Source: Oikopleura dioica
Taxonomy: Eukaryota > Animalia > Chordata
Direction of reading: 5' to 3'
Assembly: GCA_907165135.1 (NCBI GenBank)
Contig: OU015567.1
Location: forward strand, 1,922,001 to 1,986,000
DNA length: 64,000 nucleotides
Position numbers and translations under genes: made by a program. How positions within the stretch are numbered: position 1 is the first letter of the stretch; the number at the start of each line of letters is the position of its first letter. Positions 50,201 to 60,172 of this stretch are shown piece after piece. The notes beneath the pieces are model-generated. The model did not search any database, was not told where the DNA came from, and saw only the letters and a program-made list of their open reading frames with translations.

Positions 50201-50622
50201 TTACAGTAAGGCGTTAAGAATAGCTTTTTATCTTCTTGAGACTCTTGCCATGATTCGGTTTCTTGTTCGGGCCTTGTATTTGAGCTTGAAATCATCAGCT
50301 TTTTTCTTTTCTTCCGGAGCAATCTTTTTTATATCTTTGTAGTAGTAGACAAAGACTTTCAGAAGGATTCTTTAACTTTGAAAGAACAACACCTTAGAGT
50401 ACTCCTGTAGAGATACTACATTCTTCTCGTGCTATTTATCGTCGATCAAAAGATTATGAAAAGGAAAATTCATATTGATTGTTCAAATAGATATTTTCAT
50501 GATTTTCAGGCTTTTTATTGTTAATTTTTCTCCTCACAGCTGTTCTAGGGCTTTTTTTATCAAACAATTTTTGCGATCAATTTTTTGACAATCTTTGCGC
50601 TCTTTTCACTGTTTTTTTAATA

Positions 50623-52640
50623 TCAAAATCCGTGTCCTAGTAAAAGCAGAAGACAAAGCTGGAAGGCGATAATTGCGATGATCGTGCCCAGCGCGATAAC
50701 TTCTAACGGATTGAAACATCTAAACATAGCACGTGGTTATGTGGCGTAATCTAACCGTCAGCCGCTTACGAGTCAGAAAATGGTTTTGCTTTTGTTTGGA
50801 AACCGTCTTTGTTGGGTTCTACTGGGGCGCATCGAGAGGTGAATCTTAGAAATATTTTTTAGAAAAAAAAATTCTGAAAAATCAAACCTGATGTCAGTAA
50901 ACCAAGATTCATCAAGCATCATGCAAAACCAGTGTCTTTCAACTTCCGAAACAGCAGTTGTAAAAGTGTTGTTCTTCGCCACAATTGTTCCATCTGGCAA
51001 AACTCGATTCAACCTGCAAGCATTACAGTTACATAAAGAAAGAAAGATGTACCTCGGATCAAGGGCGGACTCGGATTTGATACAGATCGTTATGGCAGTG
51101 CAGCAGATAAACATGACTAAAATGAATGATTTTTTGACAGGAAGATTGAGGTCTTAGATGAGAAAACAAAGGATTATTATTTTTTCTCGAGAATAGAACT
51201 TCTAATTTTTTTTTTCTTGAAAATCATAAGATTCATGATATTTTCGTAAACTTTGATTTTTCTGACAAATTATTGACTGATAGATTTCTCTAACGAAAGG
51301 TTATCGTTCGATATAAAGTTGTGGTTTATCATCAATGATTCATCATATTTAGTAACCTGTCGAAAGAATAGTGCCAAAAGTACCAATAACTTCAGCAATA
51401 AACCTAATCCACCACTTTTCGTCCTTTTGCCCGCCGCCTTCCGCAAAATATTCGCGTACGCTGCCCACTATGCTGATTACAGCCGGAATAAAGGCCATCA
51501 AGAACTGAAATGTCGGAAGCCAAAAATTTGCAATTCCAACTTCTTTATCCGGCGCTTTTTTCCAGGTTGAAGTTTTGTTGATTCTTTTTCGTCTTGGAAT
51601 TTTTAAATTGGCTAAATTTAGAGATATCCTTAAAGTAGAACGGGATGAATTACGTGCCAGTTTTCGTGGAGGACCCTTAATTATGTTTTGGGATAAAAAT
51701 AAGGATGATTTGCTCATCCAATTAAGGGTGGGGCTAACGATTTATAAATGGCGAAAAATCAAGTAGAGCAGTTTTAAAATAGCCATATTAAAATATCATT
51801 TATGAATTAATAGCGCTAGAATTTTGAATAAAAGAAGATAATTTTGATAATTAAGGGTGTAGCGATCGATAATTGCTGCAATAATTAATACTATTTTGGG
51901 CTCAAATGTTCAAAATTTTGAGTACAAATTTGACATTTTCAACCCTTTCCTTGATATCGTGAAGAGTAAAAATATACAATAAAAGTATCGACTGAGTCGC
52001 ACATAATAAACGAAATAATCCCATGATCGAGAAAAATATCGTTGAGAATTGGGTAGTCGGCTATGAATTGCGTTTCCCGGTAGACTTGATCCATGAAGAA
52101 CAAATTGATCAGGTAAAGGTAGAGCTTGCAGACGGAAATGTAGATCATGCAGCTTCCGATGTCTTCGAGGGGGTCGGTGAAGAGGTTTTCGTTGACTCTG
52201 GCGGAGGATTTGTTGCGAAATTTTCAAATTTAGCGCGAAAAAGGGCGGAAAAAATGACTCATCTCTTCATCAGTACAGAACTCCTGACTCTGACGTGTAT
52301 TGATTTAGAATCTTAGGCTTCTTAAAATCATCTTGCGGAAGTTTTCGAATTCTCGATCCTCTATTCCTGTATTCAAACCACACGACGATGCTTGGATAAA
52401 CCCCCAAAATCGGCCAAATGTAGTCGAGTCCGATCGCAAAAGCCAGGTCCTTTTTAGATTCTTGCTCCGAGCGCGGCTTGTCCAGCCAGAATTCTATCTA
52501 ATGCCGGGATTACGAGAGTGCCGCTCGCGTTTGATTCATGACAATTCTAGAGGCGGAAATTCAACTGAACCCGGCGCCTTTGAGTAAGTAGCGTAACCGG
52601 CAGCGCAGGAACAAATTAAAAGAATGATGAGTTGCGTGAT
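50623..52640 (-). CDS. Multi-pass membrane domain (about 8 predicted TM); probably the 3' part of the EGF-repeat gene
   Basis: Hydrophobic segments: GAFITQLIILLICSCAAGY; LAFAIGLDYIWPILGVYPSIVVWF; IGSCMIYISVCKLYLYLINLFF; IFLDHGIISFIMCDSVDTFIVYFY; FWLPTFQFLMAFIPAVISIVGSV; WWIRFIAEVIGTFGTILST; SFILVMFICCTAITICI; LEVIALGTIIAIIAFQLCLLLLLG. They are joined in frame by short introns, including a GA-AG intron at 52498-52547. No usable start codon of its own was found. Confidence 0.65.
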
Positions 52641-55600
52641 AAAAGCGCCAGTTCCTTTTTATCGGTTTTGAATTTCAGCCTTTTTCGCAAAAAATACAGC
52701 ATAACTTCATGTTTATCTATAAATGATAAAAACCAAGTCCTGACGCCGTCGAAATAAGCGGTATTACGGAGCCCACAATATTGGCAGCTGCTTCGGCCAC
52801 CTCTTTTGAACGTGACGCTCCAGCATCAGCGGCACTTTGATTTTTAAATGTTGCGCCGACGGACATGCTCTGAAATTACTGTTGATTCTTTTGACACTTT
52901 CCAAATAGCACGTCAAAACTCTAAAGTCGAAATTATACCTTTGAAGAGCGCGCACGTTTAGATCTGCCATCAGATGATGATCCAAGCTCCGCCGAGGCTA
53001 GAATTTTGCAGGATATGAGCCCGTCGTCTTTGAATTTTTCGTAACAATTTTGGAGCATCACGAAATGGAGGGATCAAAAAACGGCTAAGAAAACAAAAGA
53101 TAAGGAGCAAAATACGCTATATTATATTATATTATATTATATTATATTATATTATATTATATTATATTATATTATATTATATTATATTATATTATATTAT
53201 ATTATATTATATTATATTATATTATATTATATTATATTATATTATATTATATTATATTATATTATATTATATTTAAAATATTTGTGATTTGATCCCATTT
53301 TCTTCACCAGTTCTAGCAAGAGTTTCATCCGTATCCACGACAAATTTCATTTTCGTCTGTTTTTCGAGTTTCTCAGTTCAATCTTTCGCACGTTTTTGTT
53401 TTCAACTTCAACCCATATTTACGACTTGTTCAAGTACCAGGCGTGGTGAACCTCTGTGGTCAGAGCTTGTTTGGAGAAACCCTTCCCTGAGCATAAGTGC
53501 GCTTTTCGGAATAAGAAGCTGTCAGCGATTTGCCGAAATCCTAACATTCTGGTTCTCACGTTGTTTTAGCTTGATTTTAAATGGATAAATAAGGGTATCA
53601 CTACGGTAATTTTTGAAGAAAATTTAATGTGAAAAAAAAGGGACTTCCTTCCGGGAAATTCTTCCGCCTTTCGTTTTTGAACCAGGCCTGCGAGGATTGG
53701 CTATAACACTCATCATCAATCATGTTTATGAACAAATCATTGCCCTGGCAAGTTTGATTGCACGGGCAAACGCTGATGTACGGCCGCTCGTTCACATCGG
53801 TCAAATCTGCAAGGAGAGCAACTTCGTATTTCGTGAAGCCTTTTACATCTCGGATTATTTGTGGGTCGGTTCTGGCTAAATCGTCGGAGCTGAAAACTTC
53901 CAAGCAGAGTGATTTCACTGTTCGATCGAAGAGTTCTTTTATAGAAAAACTCAAGAGGATATGTTTGAATAGCACGACCCCCTCTCTTACGTGGAACTGG
54001 GTCTCTAAAGCCTCAAATTTTATCTCCCTCGGTATCCTTAACCTATCGCTTCTGTAAATATATCCTGGCCTAAATTTGACGACTCCAAAGTCGCAAATGT
54101 CAACCGTTGCTTCTTCGCTGTCATCTGCGAGCTCGACGTCGTAAGGGTCGTCGTCAGAGACGCACTTGAATCCATCACCGATCAAATTCGATGGACAGGC
54201 GCAAGTGAACGAGCCCACCGTATTGGAGCAATTTCCACGGGGAGAGCAGTCGTGACTCGCAGTTGCGCACTCGTCTACGTCCACACAGTCGTAGGAATCA
54301 TCATCGTTGAAGAAGCCTTCATTACATTCGCAGTCAAACGATCCCAGCTGATTTAGGCACATTCCATTTAGACACGTTACCAGACCAGTTGAGCATTCAT
54401 CAATGTCCTGGCAGATGGGATTTTCTGAAATGGAGCTCTCTTAGATTTTTTTCTTCGCTAGGCTTTTTATGATTACACTATCTTTATGAGCGCAGTGAGT
54501 CGTTCGATAATTGTGGTCAGAAATCAAGTAGTACTTTAGCGAAGCTTTTCTAACTAAAAATGATAACGAGTGATAAAAAGTAGAATTTTCGAGCGTCTTT
54601 TTGAGAGCTCTTCCCTTTTGAATTTTCAAATCCTTCGTCACAAATGCACTCAAATCCGCCAAGAGTGTTCTCACAAGTTCCAAACTCGCCACATCTACCG
54701 GTATCTTCCTCCGCGCATTCGTCCACATCTTCGCAAAGAGAGCTCGTCATGTTCATCTGAAAGCCATCGATGCAAGAACAATCGTATGAGCCATCGTTGT
54801 TGTGACAAATTGAAAAGGGGCCACAAAACGTGGTGGTATTGAGGGAGCACTCATCAATATCTATGCAAATGAACTGATCGGTGGGATTATGGAAAGGGGA
54901 TTTTTCATAGCCAACGGAACAGGAGCAAGTGTAGGAGCCGACTGTATTTGTGCATTTCTTTTTCGAGATACGATTAATAAAATTGATGATTGGCCAAAAG
55001 TCACCAAATGTCTCCAAATGTCGCAAAATGTCGGAAAATGTCGAAATTTAAACATCGTGTCAAAGTTTCAAAACATGTTGTTATCAAAAAATTTTATCAC
55101 TATCTTAACTTAAATTTAAATCTATCGCGATATGGACTTTTTAACCAAGACCGAAATCTAGAAGATGTAATCAGGAAATTCGGAAATTCTCTTTTGTATC
55201 TGCATTCCTGGTTGGCACCGCAAGCCTGTTGCCCGGTTTCGTGCTGATCGCATTCGTCCACATCCGCGCACGTGGTGCCAAGATCGTTCTCTGATCGCGG
55301 CGGTTGAAATGAACATAAGTCAAGCTAGCTCTTACAGGAGGTTATGACCAATCTAATTGCCACCTCGTGACATCATCGAACATTTTTATTGCAAAGGCGA
55401 GAACGAGTTAACGGATCATTTAACATCAATTTAGAAAATAAGTATTTTTAAACCGAGCTCAAACTAACAGTATTAAAAATTTCACGCGAAAAAATGAACG
55501 GTCCTTATTTCTAGCTGTTCTCTCAAGAAAACTTGCTATATAAGGGTGAGATCCTTAAATTGAAGTGGTAGTTCTACGAATAAGTATCCATGCCCCAATT

Positions 55601-58600
55601 TAGAGTTGGAAAAGTAATCCGCTTATAAAAAAATTCCTGTGCGAGAAATTTCGGCAAAAACAATGATCAAAACTCTCCACTGCTCATTAATATTCAAGAC
55701 ACCCTTGAGCAAACGGGTCTACCCCAACCGCCCCATTTCCTGAATCAGCTGACCACATGAACCCTTGAGCACAAGAGCACTCAAATGAGCCATCTAAGTT
55801 TGAACACACTGTATTTGGAGTGTGACAGACATCTGTCATCGCGCACTCGTCGATGTCTATACATTTATTAGGCGGAAATTCTAGCGCCGAGTTTTCGGAA
55901 TCCAAATTGTCTTCGTATCCTGGAAGGCAGGGGCAAGAATAGAACCCAAAAGAATTGACGCATTTTGTTTTGACGGGACATTTTTTTTCCATTTCGCACT
56001 CTGAAATGATTCTAAAGGCCAATAATAGAAGAAATCTCTCACCATTGATATCAGCGCATTTTCCAGTACTCTCCCCTTCGGAAGATATTTCAAAACCATG
56101 TTTGCATATACACTCGTATGATCCCGCCAAATTCTGGCAAATTTGCGTGACCTCATCACATCGATTCTCGCCATTTGTGCATTCATTTATATCCTCGCAT
56201 ATTTTTGGTTCCCCAGGAGCAGAGGTCGACTCGTACCCAGAATTGCAGTGGCAGGCAAAATAAAGGGTTCGACAAGGTTTTTTTTTGTATAAAATGAACG
56301 GTTCCATTTTGTTGAAAAAATTGCCGAACCCGGAATCAAAGGAGCCAATGCTGTTTGTGCATTTTTGGTGCTCGCCGCAGGTGTTCTCTTCCAAACACTC
56401 GTCACTATCTTCACAGACGTTGCCCCCGATCTCAGCCAGTTTGTAACCTAAACACGCCGCCAAATAAACACTCCATCAACGAGCAGCCAGCGAGCAAGCG
56501 AGGTGATAAATAGCATTCATTTGTTGATAATTCAGTTACGTTACAAATAAATTCCGACAAAGTGAATTTTCAAATAATCATTATAAAATTATCAAGGTGA
56601 CATCAAAATTATTGCTTATTATCAACAACTGAACGAAAAAAAACAGAAAGTCTAAGTGGTTCGCAAGGAAAGAGCTCTTGAGCAACTTTACCTGGAAAGC
56701 AGGAGCAAGAAAAGCCAATAACTTCGTCGTTACAAACTTGGTCGCAATTATGGGTCTTTTGAACGCACTCATTAATTGGCTTCTTTTCGCATTTTCCACC
56801 TTCTTCTTTCATGAAATAGCCGCCGCGACATGCGCATTCATAGCTGCCGACTGTATTTGTACATCTCGCATTTTCATCACAAGGGTATTCCTCTCCCTGG
56901 CACTCGTTGATATCCTCACAGAAGCCATCCCTCTCTTCAAATCCTTCGAAGCATTCGCAGTGAGCGGAACCAATAGTGTTAACGCAAAAAGAATTGCTTG
57001 GACAAAGATGGGTCGAGGCGCATTCGTCGATATCTTCACACTGATCGTTTTTCAGAAAATAACCAGGTTTGCATTGACACTCGAAACTACCAACAGTATT
57101 GACGCAGGCTGAATTTTCGAGAATGCCGTCGCAGTAATCTTCGTCTCCAGATCTGAGGGCGCATTCGTCCATGTCATCGCAGACATCCCCGTCGCCGAGG
57201 AAACCTGGATTACACTGACAATTGAAGCTGTTTTTCGTATCTTTTGGGTAAAAAAGTCATCAAATTATCAAAAAACGGCCTTACCTATGCAATTAGCATT
57301 TTCGTCACAAGTATGCGTCCCCAAAAGACATTCATTGACAGCGCTGCTCTTGCAATTTCCATCCTTCAGCACAAACCCTGAAAAATCACTCGTTCTTATA
57401 AAAACAGGGGCAATTCTGCAAATCCATGACATTTTTCTACTCTTTCATCCTCTTTTCTTATTTTCTCTTTTTCAAAAGAAAAAAAGGGCGAGAATCGAGG
57501 TCTGCTCCAGAAGATACTTAGAAACCACTAAGTGGTTTTGTTTTGAGGTCCACAACAATCTATCAATTTTTAAGCCGGGCTGAGAAATGAAAGTGAAAGG
57601 CCATAATGAAAATAATTATTTTATGCGTTTCTTTTTTAATATACCCTGCTTAATCGAAGCAGTATTTTTAGATAAATCATTCTCAATAAGGATCTGATCG
57701 TGGACTCCTAAAATTACCTTCTAAGCATGAGCAAGAAAAACTTCCAGGAGAATTTTCGCAGATTGAATTTTCCCCACAAGCTTCTTCATTCTCCTCGCAC
57801 TCATCGATATCATAGCAAGGGGCATTTCGAGAACTTTGTTCATATCCTTCGTTGCACTCACAGAAGAAACTTCCTGATCAAAAATTTAATAATGAATGAA
57901 AACAGCGATTTTAAAATCGAAACACGAAAATCGACAATTCAAATAAAAAAGGCACCTTCAGTATTTGTACATTGCTGCTGACAAATACTGCTATTCATTT
58001 TGCACTCGTCAATGTCCTCACATCGCTTCCAATCAGAATTATACACAAATCCTTCGCTGCAGCCATTTATCTTCAAAATCCCTTTTAAAAACTCAACGAT
58101 AAAAATACTCCTCCGAGTATTTCGGCCATACTGGGACGCATATGTAGGAACCTTCGGAGTTCTGGCAAGACTCGCTTTTCAAATCGCAGTCGTGCATTCC
58201 GAATAAGCATTCGTTGATATCAATACACATAAGTTCGCGAGAGGAAGGGTCTGGGCTGAAACCATATTCGCATTCGCAGGTGGAGCCTTGGCAATAACTA
58301 TTTGCGGGACAGATTTTTGTACAGCGCGGGATTAGTCTTCCTTGATATCAAAAAGGTAGTAGAGGGTTATCGGAAAACAGTAGTTCTTCGAGCGGTCCCT
58401 TTTCCTCGACCCTGCCCAAAATTTTTCGTGATATCATTCCTGCTAAGAAAAGAGCTCCTCGTCGGATTCGTCTCAAAATCTTCCGTTTGGCAAATAAATC
58501 CAAAATATCTATTCTCTCTCTGATTGATAAACGACGAATCAAAGCAGTTTCTATAACGAAATTTGTCCGTTACTTCTCCATCCTTTCTTTTCTTCGTCTC

Positions 58601-58975
58601 AAGAATCGGGCAGAATTCACCTTTTGTTTGTCCTTCAAAAGACTCGATCCAGAACCAAGTGTTTTTGAGGCAAGGTTCGGAGGCGATTTTTCGAACGATG
58701 GGAGAGAGGATATTTCCTTGAGTGGAAATCAGGTGACCACCGGAAGAGTGGCATCGATCTGCTGCTTGAAACCATGAAAAACCGTGGGATCCAGAACTTG
58801 ATTAGGTTTTCAGAATGAAAGAGCTTCGAAAAATGAGCCGAAAATGAAAATTTCATTGTAAACCTCGACTGTGAACGTAGATGCCTCCGGTAACGTCGTA
58901 ACTTTCTTGACAACTTGTCTCTTTGAATTTCTCTGATGCTAAAAGTGGGATAAATAAAAAGAATATTCTTTTCAT
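52641..58975 (-). CDS. Large secreted/membrane protein: signal peptide + C-type lectin + about 18 (mostly Ca-binding) EGF modules + about 250-aa unknown domain; carries lesions (possible pseudogene or assembly errors)
   Basis: MKRIFFLFIPLLA signal. CTL SWFQAADRCHSSGGHL..FWI..FGFICQ. Repeated D(I/V)(D/N)EC...C.NT.GS(F/Y).C.C..G(F/Y) modules from 58300 to 54170. Lesions: a 1-nt frameshift at the A5 run 58777-58781, TAA TGA at 55684-55689, an 81-nt in-frame insertion at 56256-56340, and an unresolved exon near 53060. Confidence 0.8.
53118..53273. repeat. Perfect (ATTAT)n microsatellite, about 31 units, intronic
   Basis: Uninterrupted ATTAT units across 53121-53270. Confidence 0.98.
56260..56336. 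mobile_element. 77-nt mini-element with 11-bp TIRs and a 4-bp direct repeat, inserted in an EGF exon
   Basis: CAAA (56256-59) + ATAAA GGGTTCGACAA ... TTGCCGAACCC GGAAT + CAAA (56337-40). Removing 81 nt restores GSF-ACHC of a cbEGF. Confidence 0.75.
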
Positions 58976-59320
58976 GTCGGGAGGAAGAAACAGAATAAGA
59001 AATCGAGGACTAGTGATTTTTGGATTAGAAAAGAACTCATTTGATATTGAGCAGGATTACCAATTCATGAATCCATTGGAATAATACTTCTGCTTTCGAC
59101 CCTTCCGGATCGCGCAAAACACTCGGCAACGACTCAAAATTTCATGGAAGATATGGATTTTGATACTTTATTGGCAAGTTTAAGGGTGTCAACATCGATT
59201 TTGGCTTTATTTACTAGGCAAGCTTAGTTACTTTTCGTCATTTTATTCCGGCATTTTAATTTTTCTGAATATAATTTACTCGTTAACAGCCATAAAATTC
59301 TTAGTTTGAAATAAAATGTT

Positions 59321-60172
59321 TTATTTTTGATCATATTGAAACTGATTATAAGCAGGTCTAGTCGTGTCCGGAGCAAGCATTATTCGCTGGTTTCGAAGCC
59401 TCATGTTCGACAACGAATTGTTGAGATCATAAGTCACAGCTGAGGGAATGTCTGGGTGGCGGCGATTCGGAGCTGTTTGGCGAGGAAGCTTCCAATCTTC
59501 AAGAAAAAAACTTGGTTTTGAATTTAAATTTTGACGACTACCTTTGAAATGGCTCTGGTAATCTGATTTGCGAACATCTTCCTCAGCAGTCATCCTAGCC
59601 TTCTTTCGCTCCCAAAGTCCCCAGTTCAGGTGCCCCTTCGTTTCGCGCATGTCAGTCATTGCTGGTTCCGGGCCCCATTCGTTGTGGATGATTCGCCAAT
59701 TTCGCTCATCCCGAGACTTGAAAAGTAAGTTTTGAAATCAACAAAGACTCCTTCTACTTGTACCTTTCGCGGGCTGAAATCATAAGCATACGAAGTCGTC
59801 AAATCACAAGCGGGAGTCTTTGATCGAGTTTGACCTCGAGATCTTTCCATCAGAATTGCTTTCGTTTCATTATCGACCTGAAAAAGTGTCAGAAATAGAA
59901 AAGGGGATGAGGAGATACCGGAGCGATTTTTGGAAGAAAATCTCCCCCATAAATTGTTCGCGCGGACTTGTATGATCGAGTCGAAGGTCGGTAGTTGTGA
60001 CGATTTCGGTTTTCAACCCTGAAAATTTTTGACTTGAAAAATGCTTTTTGCATAATTCTTGAAGTCAAAAATCAAGATTTACTCGAATTAATTTTATATA
60101 TTTTTTGTCTTACCAATTTCCTACAAGCGTTTTGTCCCCATAAGTCCTCACTCCAGACTGACTAGCCAACAT
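59321..60172 (-). CDS. Ciliary microtubule inner protein with an NWE motif (CFAP107/CFAP95/CFAP68-like)
   Basis: Spliced MLASQSGVRTYGDKTLVGNW|VENR (Y...L.GNW.E.R seam-binding NWE motif), followed by Mn-like motifs TIYGGDF, TSYAYDF and SDYQSHF. Three GT-AG introns. Confidence 0.75.

Follow-up and report, generated by a model that had tools for sequence, protein, structure and literature searches.

Does the gene for a lectin- and EGF-bearing ectodomain in the larvacean Oikopleura dioica end with that ectodomain, or does it continue into the membrane-spanning exons that lie 3' of it? The question arises in a 64,000-nucleotide (nt) stretch of contig OU015567.1 (assembly GCA_907165135.1, positions 1,922,001 to 1,986,000 of the forward strand), hereafter the window. 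A preliminary description, made from the sequence alone, had proposed a single gene of new architecture there, with a C-type-lectin-like domain, about 18 EGF modules, an RSKR cleavage site and multiple transmembrane (TM) exons. Translation and Pfam searches located all of these elements on the minus strand. In the translation of positions 50400-59200, counted like all positions here from the first letter of the window, the gene occupies 50623-58975, from an ATG at 58975-58973 to a stop codon at 50625-50623. Its product consists, in order, of a signal peptide, the C-type-lectin-like domain, 18 EGF modules, a domain of 170 amino acids (aa), an RSKR-containing stalk and the multipass exons. Probably this is one gene for a large glycoprotein of the membrane, with a lectin-EGF ectodomain, the 170-aa domain, a putatively cleavable SEA-like stalk and a seven-helix domain of no described family. 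Searches, fold predictions and selection tests were carried out exon by exon or on natural relatives that consist of a single open reading frame (ORF).

Fusion of the ectodomain to the membrane exons

The junction in question lies between the last exon of the stalk, which ends at 52734 (..STASGL), and the next exon, which begins at 52654; splicing gives G-TGAFITQLIILL. The intron had been placed at about 52641-52717 with a length of 77 nt. The GT-AG junction itself is real, but the intron is 79 nt long and lies about 15 nt away. From the stalk to the end of the gene the features are:

53308..53371, minus strand: probably stalk strand 1 and the beginning of helix 1 (KMKFVVDTDETLART), with canonical introns
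52939..53073, minus strand: stalk exon A, with helix 1, strand 2 and the RSKR loop; homologous to the stalk of paralogue L003 (E 7e-4)
52734..52869, minus strand: stalk exon B, with strand 3, helix 2 and strand 4, after the cleavage site (..VGSVIPLISTASGL); a 69-nt GT-AG intron lies 5' of the exon
52655..52733, minus strand: key intron, 79 nt, GT-AG, phase 1, joining ...STASGL-G-TGAFITQL...
52578..52654, minus strand: TM1 exon (GTGAFITQLIILLICSCAAGYATYSK), identified by the L020 alignment and as third-best of 2125 ORFs against the family profile
52498..52577, minus strand: GC-AG intron, 80 nt, phase 0; the same AAG/GC donor (exon AAG, then GC) in L022 and L023
52367..52497, minus strand: TM2 exon, ending in the family motif P..P....WFEY; profile E 2.8e-7 to 3.8e-8, 93% identity to L022
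52198..52366, minus strand: GA-AG intron, 169 nt, phase 2; donor conserved in L022 and L023
51944..52197, minus strand: exon of TM3, which has a conserved Lys, and of TM4, which YFY..R closes; profile E 8e-21
51357..51554, minus strand: TM5 and first part of TM6; profile E 9e-4; P0034 and P0040 join TM4 to TM5
51053..51116, minus strand: second part of TM6 (VMFICCTAITICI...); P0046 and L021 read ...LS(A/T)(L/V)MF(I/V)CC.. unbroken
50888..51013, minus strand: probable outside loop with an NNT sequon and Cys; preceded by a 39-nt GT-AG intron, with L021 unbroken across the junction
50623..50719, minus strand: last exon, with TM7 and the stop codon; the same exon in L021
50514..50519, minus strand: first AATAAA 3' of the gene

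Both the donor and the acceptor of the key intron are kept in the close orthologues L022 and L023, where the intron is about 190 nt long and unalignable, and L020 (a 4969-nt JGI metagenome contig) lacks this intron. A single L020 ORF (1883-2311) runs from the end of stalk exon B through TM1 into the start of TM2: its residues 36-50 align with stalk exon B (E 3e-5) and its residues 53-74 with the TM1 exon (E 3e-7), leaving two residues between. On these alignments L020 is the decisive orthologue for the fusion. In P0026 (a 785-nt Tara contig) TM1, TM2 and TM3 lie in one ORF, and in the paralogues L004-L007 the end of the ectodomain, the basic site, the stalk and TM1 to TM4 share one ORF of 273-386 aa. 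When a family profile without the window rows was compared with the 2125 window ORFs, the three best matches were the TM3-4 exon (E 1.6e-17), the TM2 exon (E 2.8e-7) and the TM1 exon (E 0.8). These are collinear, at profile positions 233-320, 198-233 and 165-184, respectively. Judged by these reading frames the stalk-to-membrane fusion is real, and the lineage-specific one-gene architecture proposed earlier is found directly in orthologues and paralogues.

The borders of the gene were also considered. The frames of the TM1 and TM2 exons hold no Met, which leaves the multipass exons without their own start, as had been described. AATAAA occurs on the gene's strand only at 59172, 55869, 55390 and 50519. 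With none between 55385 and 50519, the first polyadenylation signal after the EGF part falls 3' of the last membrane exon. Immediately upstream of the gene, on the minus strand, there is a 112-aa ATG-to-stop ORF at 59321-59659, separated from the EGF gene by the AATAAA at 59167-59172; a search for an identical product gave no record.

Two of the introns downstream of TM1 are non-canonical (GC-AG and GA-AG), and both reproduce the WFEY-R/K-VNE(N/K)LF spacing of intronless relatives. P0026, P0023 and P0037 read WFEY-K-VNEKLF, the same spacing as in the window after the GA-AG splice. The occurrence of a GC-AG and a GA-AG intron in one gene is an observation in its own right: donor dinucleotides and positions are kept in L022 and L023, and the intron bodies cannot be aligned.

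L022 and L023 share 89% amino-acid identity with the window and have stalk A, stalk B, TM1, TM2, TM3-4 and TM5 in unchanged order. Their exons are conserved and their splice positions identical to those of the window; the introns are unalignable and differ in length. Over 268 codons compared exon by exon between the window and L022, synonymous divergence (dS) is about 1.3, non-synonymous divergence (dN) 0.069 and their ratio (omega) about 0.05. The TM1 exon has nine synonymous changes and one non-synonymous change, and stalk exon A (86% amino-acid identity) has a dN of 0.08 vs a dS of 0.42. By these substitution rates the stalk and membrane exons are under strong purifying selection. The 3' part of the gene is covered by L021, in which a single ORF runs from the end of TM4 through TM5, TM6 and the loop; a further orthologue, P0102, lies on a 51-kb contig. 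A thioredoxin/PDI-like ORF (..APWCGHCK..) is found in L021 at 1031-1192, 3' of the orthologue's last exon and on the same strand.

The ectodomain and the state of the Okinawa allele

The ectodomain part of the gene is made up of the following features:

58864..58975, minus strand: exon 1, with the ATG, the signal peptide and the first part of the C-type-lectin-like domain (from translation)
58412..58796, minus strand: C-type-lectin-like domain exon (Pfam Lectin_C), followed by a 70-nt GT-AG intron
54155..58340, minus strand: 18 EGF modules (1 plain, 17 of the calcium-binding type) in about 10 exons (Pfam EGF_CA, cEGF, EGF_3)
53646..54154, minus strand: 170-aa domain after EGF17, in the same ORF as EGF16-17, kept in the orthologue L020

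The Lectin_C match is marginal but above the gathering score (22.9 bits vs a cut-off of 22.6, E 1.5e-4, profile positions 4-65 of 107), and the C-terminal Cys pattern of a lectin domain is seen in the translation. EGF modules were counted by eye from the translations, and 17 of them start with D/N-x-D/N-E-C. EGF_CA was detected at 36.9 to 113 bits on seven ORF segments, while three more segments were under the 27-bit cut-off or gave no match. The 170-aa domain is conserved in L020 (E 1e-8 and 7e-17); it has no Pfam match, no paralogue elsewhere in the genome and no ESM Atlas lead.

The EGF array is linked to the stalk in two steps. In the window one ORF runs from EGF16-17 into the 170-aa domain, and in L020 the end of that domain shares an ORF with the first stalk strand, the strand being assigned by eye. 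The window exon at 53308-53371 was likewise matched by eye to L020 ORF 756-1136, which reads ...QSKMKLSIDNEEV. BLAST found no match between the exon of the first stalk strand and paralogue L003, nor between stalk exon A and P0058.

In the window, whose copy of the gene is here called the Okinawa allele, the ectodomain contains anomalies. One is the join of exon 1 to exon 2, and the others are:

56256..56340, minus strand: in-frame insertion within EGF9; about 28 extra residues between GSF and ACHC, read through in frame
54952..55201, minus strand: 250-nt insertion within EGF13, flanked by near-duplicate AATGCA; no GT-AG option
53074..53076, minus strand: in-frame TGA, immediately 5' of the conserved SL..VMLQNCYEKF coding block

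At the exon 1/2 junction the donor at 58863 is in phase 1 and the acceptor at 58797, the sole acceptor 5' of the conserved lectin motif, needs phase 2; no G[TACG]-AG pair joins the exons in frame as assembled. An in-frame canonical escape acceptor was read by us at 58765, outside the range scanned; its use would remove SGSHGFSWFQ. A one-base homopolymer error could also account for the mismatch. The EGF13 insertion splits its module between ..ANQEC and TNTVGSY. Its only in-frame options are of the GA-AG type and add six residues (RYKRK and one more Cys). Within the insertion, a 50-nt core made up of GACATTTT-like repeats recurs at five other genome sites. The insertion may be what is left of a transposon, or else an unconventional intron.

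The TGA is specific to the window, since L022 and L023 read AAA at this position and are open back to a TTTAG acceptor, and since L020 is intronless there and reads LARTGEIVLQNCY. No AG occurs between the TGA and the conserved block in the window. A window-specific G creates, in our reading, an alternative acceptor at 53030/53029, which keeps the frame and loses the first Cys of helix 1. The intron upstream of the TGA that interrupts stalk helix 1 also carries an (ATATA)n microsatellite of about 155 nt (53118-53272), in a region that is intronless in L020.

Because four sites resist canonical splicing, the Okinawa allele may be damaged, or unusually spliced, in its ectodomain. It had been suspected of being dead or mis-assembled. 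The lesions are real as assembled, but they are confined to the ectodomain; the stalk and membrane exons are without any defect and under the selection described above. It is possible, if rather unlikely, that the Okinawa copy represents a pseudogene or an allele that was disabled recently, so that the family architecture would be real and the full lectin-EGF protein no longer made. The missing in-frame join of exon 1 to the lectin exon, the two insertions inside EGF exons and the TGA where L022 and L023 are open would all fit such an allele. Intact stalk and membrane exons with an omega of about 0.05 do not, and by our reading a canonical acceptor could keep the frame at two of the four anomalies (58765 and 53030/53029). 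As for the others, the EGF9 insertion is read through in frame and the EGF13 insertion has in-frame GA-AG options. The exon insertions could be unconventional introns, and the exon 1/2 mismatch could be a single-base homopolymer error.

The membrane domain

About eight TM segments had been counted at this locus. When splicing uses the proximal acceptor at 51117, which P0046 and L021 both support, hydrophobic stretches six and seven become a single 32-aa segment, and the number of helices is therefore seven, not eight. The corresponding stretch is 35 to 39 aa long in relatives and forms one helix in the AlphaFold2 model. The model of the relative P0006 (mean predicted local distance difference test score, pLDDT, 70) has seven long helices, with pLDDT of at least 85 for TM1 to TM4 and lower values in the C-terminal half; hydropathy agrees with this count.

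The predicted topology would place the N-terminus outside and the C-terminus inside, with seven helices between them. Under this topology the K/R-rich loops TM1-2, TM3-4 and TM5-6 are inside by our reading; outside lie the WYEY loop, which is acidic, the PG..VS loop and, before the last helix, a Cys-rich loop with N-x-T sites. In relatives the latter loop contains two to four Cys and N-x-T sites. The cytoplasmic tail after TM7 is only a few residues long.

Neither the membrane domain nor the stalk matched any Pfam family at cut-off, either in all window exons or in 16 family proteins and ORFs. GPS, GAIN, 7tm_2 and SEA in particular gave no Pfam match in window exons or family members, which bears out the lack of a GPS motif noted in the preliminary description. 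A PDB sequence search with the family profile returned nothing, Foldseek found no match to the membrane-domain model below E 0.35, and a wide VIA search of the same model returned only helical bundles of a generic kind (Z up to 8.6), the top 50 containing no G protein-coupled receptor (GPCR) or XK chain. The best ESM Atlas feature match is an XK-related cluster at 0.78, a value within the chance range stated by the tool.

From these sequence and model searches the membrane domain belongs to no described family, and it was not recognized as a standalone member of a known one by Pfam, PDB profile, Foldseek or VIA searches. It is unlikely, then, that it is a much diverged XK-related scramblase, GPCR class or other transporter, in which case the novelty would lie in the domain combination only. 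The XK-related cluster is the best Atlas match and seven helices with the N-terminus outside are GPCR-like in outline, but the Atlas value is no better than chance by the tool's own range, and the Pfam, PDB, Foldseek and VIA results all speak against such an origin. Identity with the XK-related family (PF09815) was rejected: there is no Pfam match and no XK chain among the fold matches, and the Atlas match is the sole signal.

Products of intron retention

If the 79-nt or the 80-nt intron is retained, the frame soon meets a stop. The unspliced form had been described as ending GLGFYHL* in the manner of a glycosylphosphatidylinositol (GPI) signal. However, the read-through tail is GFYHL* in the window, and in L022 and L023 the stop follows after one codon; the tail is thus not conserved.

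An isoform pair, in which intron retention gives a shed or lipid-anchored ectodomain beside the multipass form, is accordingly doubtful. The unspliced form does stop soon after the stalk, which is what such an isoform would need, but its tail differs between orthologues, and VIPLISTASGLGFYHL is, by our reading, weakly hydrophobic for a GPI signal. Two adjacent genes are very improbable. One would encode a lectin-EGF protein, either secreted, single-pass or GPI-anchored, whose frame closes at the TAG that follows GLGFYHL or at the TGA that follows TM1, and the other a separate multipass protein. The in-frame stops of the retained introns would suit them, but the TM1 and TM2 exon frames lack a Met, L020 and P0026 encode stalk, TM1, TM2 and TM3 unbroken, the tail here is replaced by an immediate stop in L022, no AATAAA precedes 50519, and the family profile matches TM1, TM2 and TM3-4 collinearly.

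The stalk and its basic site

The juxtamembrane stalk of the one gene that appears to encode both halves contains RSKR at 52954-52965, which fits the R-x-K/R-R motif of furin and other proprotein convertases. The furin-type site of the preliminary description is thus present, and the same column is basic in paralogues and orthologues. Across the family it reads RSKR, RKRR, KRR, RKKR, RRRR, RRKR or RHRR and lies about 50 to 60 residues before TM1.

The fold of the stalk was modelled with AlphaFold2 on a relative, P0021, from the family alignment (mean pLDDT 74.6; stalk pLDDT 77 to 90). The model has strands at residues 46-57, 85-96 and 123-134 and helices at 62-84 and 140-162, followed by TM1, and RNRKRR (residues 111-116) lies in a low-confidence loop between strands 2 and 3. 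The window stalk was read by eye in the same order: KMKFVVDTDE (strand 1), ..NCYEKFKDDG (helix 1), LISCKILASAE (strand 2), the loop SSDGRSKR/ARSSK with the predicted cut after RSKR, SMSVGATFKN (strand 3), SKEVAEAAANIVG (helix 2) and SVIPLIS (strand 4).

Foldseek matched the P0021 stalk to ferredoxin-like domains with a probability of 0.96 to 1.0 and weak E-values (0.01 to 0.3), among them 2e7v, the SEA domain of a transmembrane protease (probability 0.96). In VIA the stalk reached Z 7.0 to 8.4, with a root-mean-square deviation of 2.4 to 3.4 A, for the ferredoxin-fold domains of PheRS and MscS. SEA domains scored Z 7.5 (2e7v), 7.3 (TMPRSS6) and 7.0 (MUC16 SEA5), and non-SEA ferredoxin folds scored equal or higher. 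[quoted passage not shown] Membership of the SEA family itself is unsupported, since Pfam SEA (PF01390) gave no match at E up to 1 in family proteins and ORFs. No GSVVV-like autoproteolysis motif is found in the window stalk.

Cleavage in the beta2-beta3 loop is common to the SEA domains of MUC1, Notch2 and GPR126; for the last two furin is the protease and acts at (R/K)-X-K-R, and the halves remain associated until force parts them (PMC6954182). This loop also holds the family's basic site in the P0021 model, a placement shared with the SEA domains of Notch2 and GPR126. A literature search on furin and transmembrane proteins in Oikopleura found nothing relevant.

The family and its ectodomains

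A search of the genome (64.3 Mb, 19 contigs) with the TM3-4 exon found five paralogues. When profile A2 was compared with 1.84 billion cluster representatives, 66 proteins were retrieved at E up to 0.001, all of 487 aa or less. The sources of 30 of the 66 were looked up: one bore an organism label, O. dioica CBY10432, and the other 29 came from ENA, JGI and Logan assemblies. The contigs of relatives that were fetched are from Tara Oceans and JGI marine metagenomes. In these sequence searches the family was seen only in Oikopleura dioica and in marine-metagenome contigs.

An earlier sequence search for paralogue L005 returned the O. dioica OKI2018_I69 protein P0001 (gene model g4331), and the paralogue product is 100% identical over the aligned part to Oidioi.mRNA.OKI2018_I69.chr2.g4331, which makes the genome the Okinawa assembly of O. 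dioica. P0001 (321 aa; L012, G000:C5:1686000-1695999) has as its first residue an internal Met that closely follows the basic site. The g4331 model ends by reading into an intron and is without the mucin ectodomain and the last helix and exon. The family therefore seems under-annotated, as the model of at least this paralogue misses both the ectodomain and the last exon.

Several features are constant in the family: the basic site, ..IIP..(6-10)..YF..Q leading into TM1, P..P...WY(E/D)Y at the end of TM2, the TM3 Lys and the YFY..R that closes TM4. Two conservative changes apart, every one of them is retained in the window. The ectodomains vary. Thr-rich mucin tracts occur in L005, L007 and L004, the last of which also has a Sushi-like module; L003 has Cys-rich and CUB-like regions, and L016 has Ly6/uPAR-like Cys-rich repeats. 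Apart from the mucin tracts, these module names are our own reading of the translations and Pfam found none of them. Across the sequences compared, ectodomains are swapped while the stalk, the basic site and the membrane domain stay constant.

Two neighbouring regions of relatives were also recorded. Upstream of P0058, at L016 6754-9468 (Tara contig k119_927438), ORFs with ..CYKCKS.. and ..CYQCKG.. repeats have a Ly6/uPAR-like look, for which Pfam gave nothing. Upstream of L003 and on the same strand, at L010 8000-9750 (G000:C4, about 3.180 Mb), there is an astacin-type metalloprotease motif (HEFFHALGFLHEHQRPDRD) together with a Cys-rich module that looks LDLa-like.

Working model and known systems

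If the parts are put together, a furin-type convertase would cut the stalk in the secretory pathway, and the two halves would stay joined non-covalently, as in SEA domains, Notch and GPR126. A pull on the adhesive ectodomain, or its shedding, would then alter the state of the seven-helix domain. The protein may act as a mechanosensory receptor or channel, as was first suggested from the sequence.

Several points weigh against a single intact protein of this kind. All splice junctions were placed from DNA sequence, and four ectodomain sites are without canonical splicing as assembled. The link from the EGF array to the stalk comes from the window ORF and L020 only, all orthologue contigs stopping short of the array. 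The stalk fold was modelled on the relative P0021; what it matches, at weak E-values, is the ferredoxin-like fold in general, and Pfam SEA is silent. The C-terminal half of the P0006 membrane-domain model is of low confidence.

Among known systems, the adhesion GPCRs (GPR126 in particular), Notch and the SEA mucins come nearest, and the defining tests of each gave negative results here. Like the adhesion GPCRs (GPR126/ADGRG6, EGF-TM7), the window gene has a modular adhesive ectodomain, a juxtamembrane module with a cleavage site and seven helices with the N-terminus outside, and the furin cut of GPR126 at (R/K)-X-K-R in the SEA beta2-beta3 loop (PMC6954182) has its counterpart in the basic site. 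Unlike them, it is without GAIN/GPS, HormR, 7tm_2 or a GPCR fold match, and its SEA-like stalk directly adjoins TM1. Identity with an adhesion GPCR (class B2) was rejected on the negative GAIN/GPS and 7tm_2 searches.

With Notch it shares a calcium-binding EGF array followed by a SEA-like module; in Notch this is the heterodimerisation domain, which furin cuts in a loop and whose halves stay associated (PMC6954182). Notch, however, has LNR repeats, one TM helix and an ankyrin intracellular domain, whereas the window gene has seven helices and hardly any tail, and its exons gave no Pfam match to LNR or ankyrin domains. Identity with Notch was rejected on all three features.

The SEA mucins (MUC1, MUC16) resemble the paralogues that carry Thr-rich tracts before a cleavable stalk, and MUC16 SEA5 matches the modelled stalk at Z 7.0. 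They differ in that mucins self-cleave at G, before SVVV, and have a single helix, whereas here there are a dibasic site, a polytopic anchor and no Pfam SEA match.

There is also a likeness in outline to the polycystin PKD1. PKD1-like proteins have a C-type lectin domain within a huge adhesive ectodomain, which is followed by a juxtamembrane module that is cleaved and by a polytopic domain. The window gene likewise combines an adhesive, lectin-bearing ectodomain, a juxtamembrane module with predicted cleavage and a polytopic domain. PKD1 itself undergoes GAIN/GPS autoproteolysis and has 11 helices and a TRP-like channel part; GAIN/GPS and the TRP-like channel part were not detected in the window gene or the family by Pfam, Foldseek or VIA.

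Significance

Cleaved, tethered adhesion receptors (Notch, adhesion GPCRs, polycystins, membrane mucins) are central to mechanosensing and cell contact, and few membrane modules are used in them. At this locus the same logic would be built on a seven-helix domain without a detectable relative, in a family with shuffled ectodomains within one compact chordate genome. The family may offer a natural experiment on receptor assembly by exon shuffling and a new membrane fold to solve. Tentatively, larvaceans may have evolved their own adhesion-type seven-helix receptors, unrelated to GPCRs, in which a furin-cut SEA-like stalk would tether interchangeable ectodomains to a new signalling or transport domain. 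Such receptors would be convergent with adhesion GPCRs and Notch, and might possibly allow the house-secreting epithelium to sense or hold the house.

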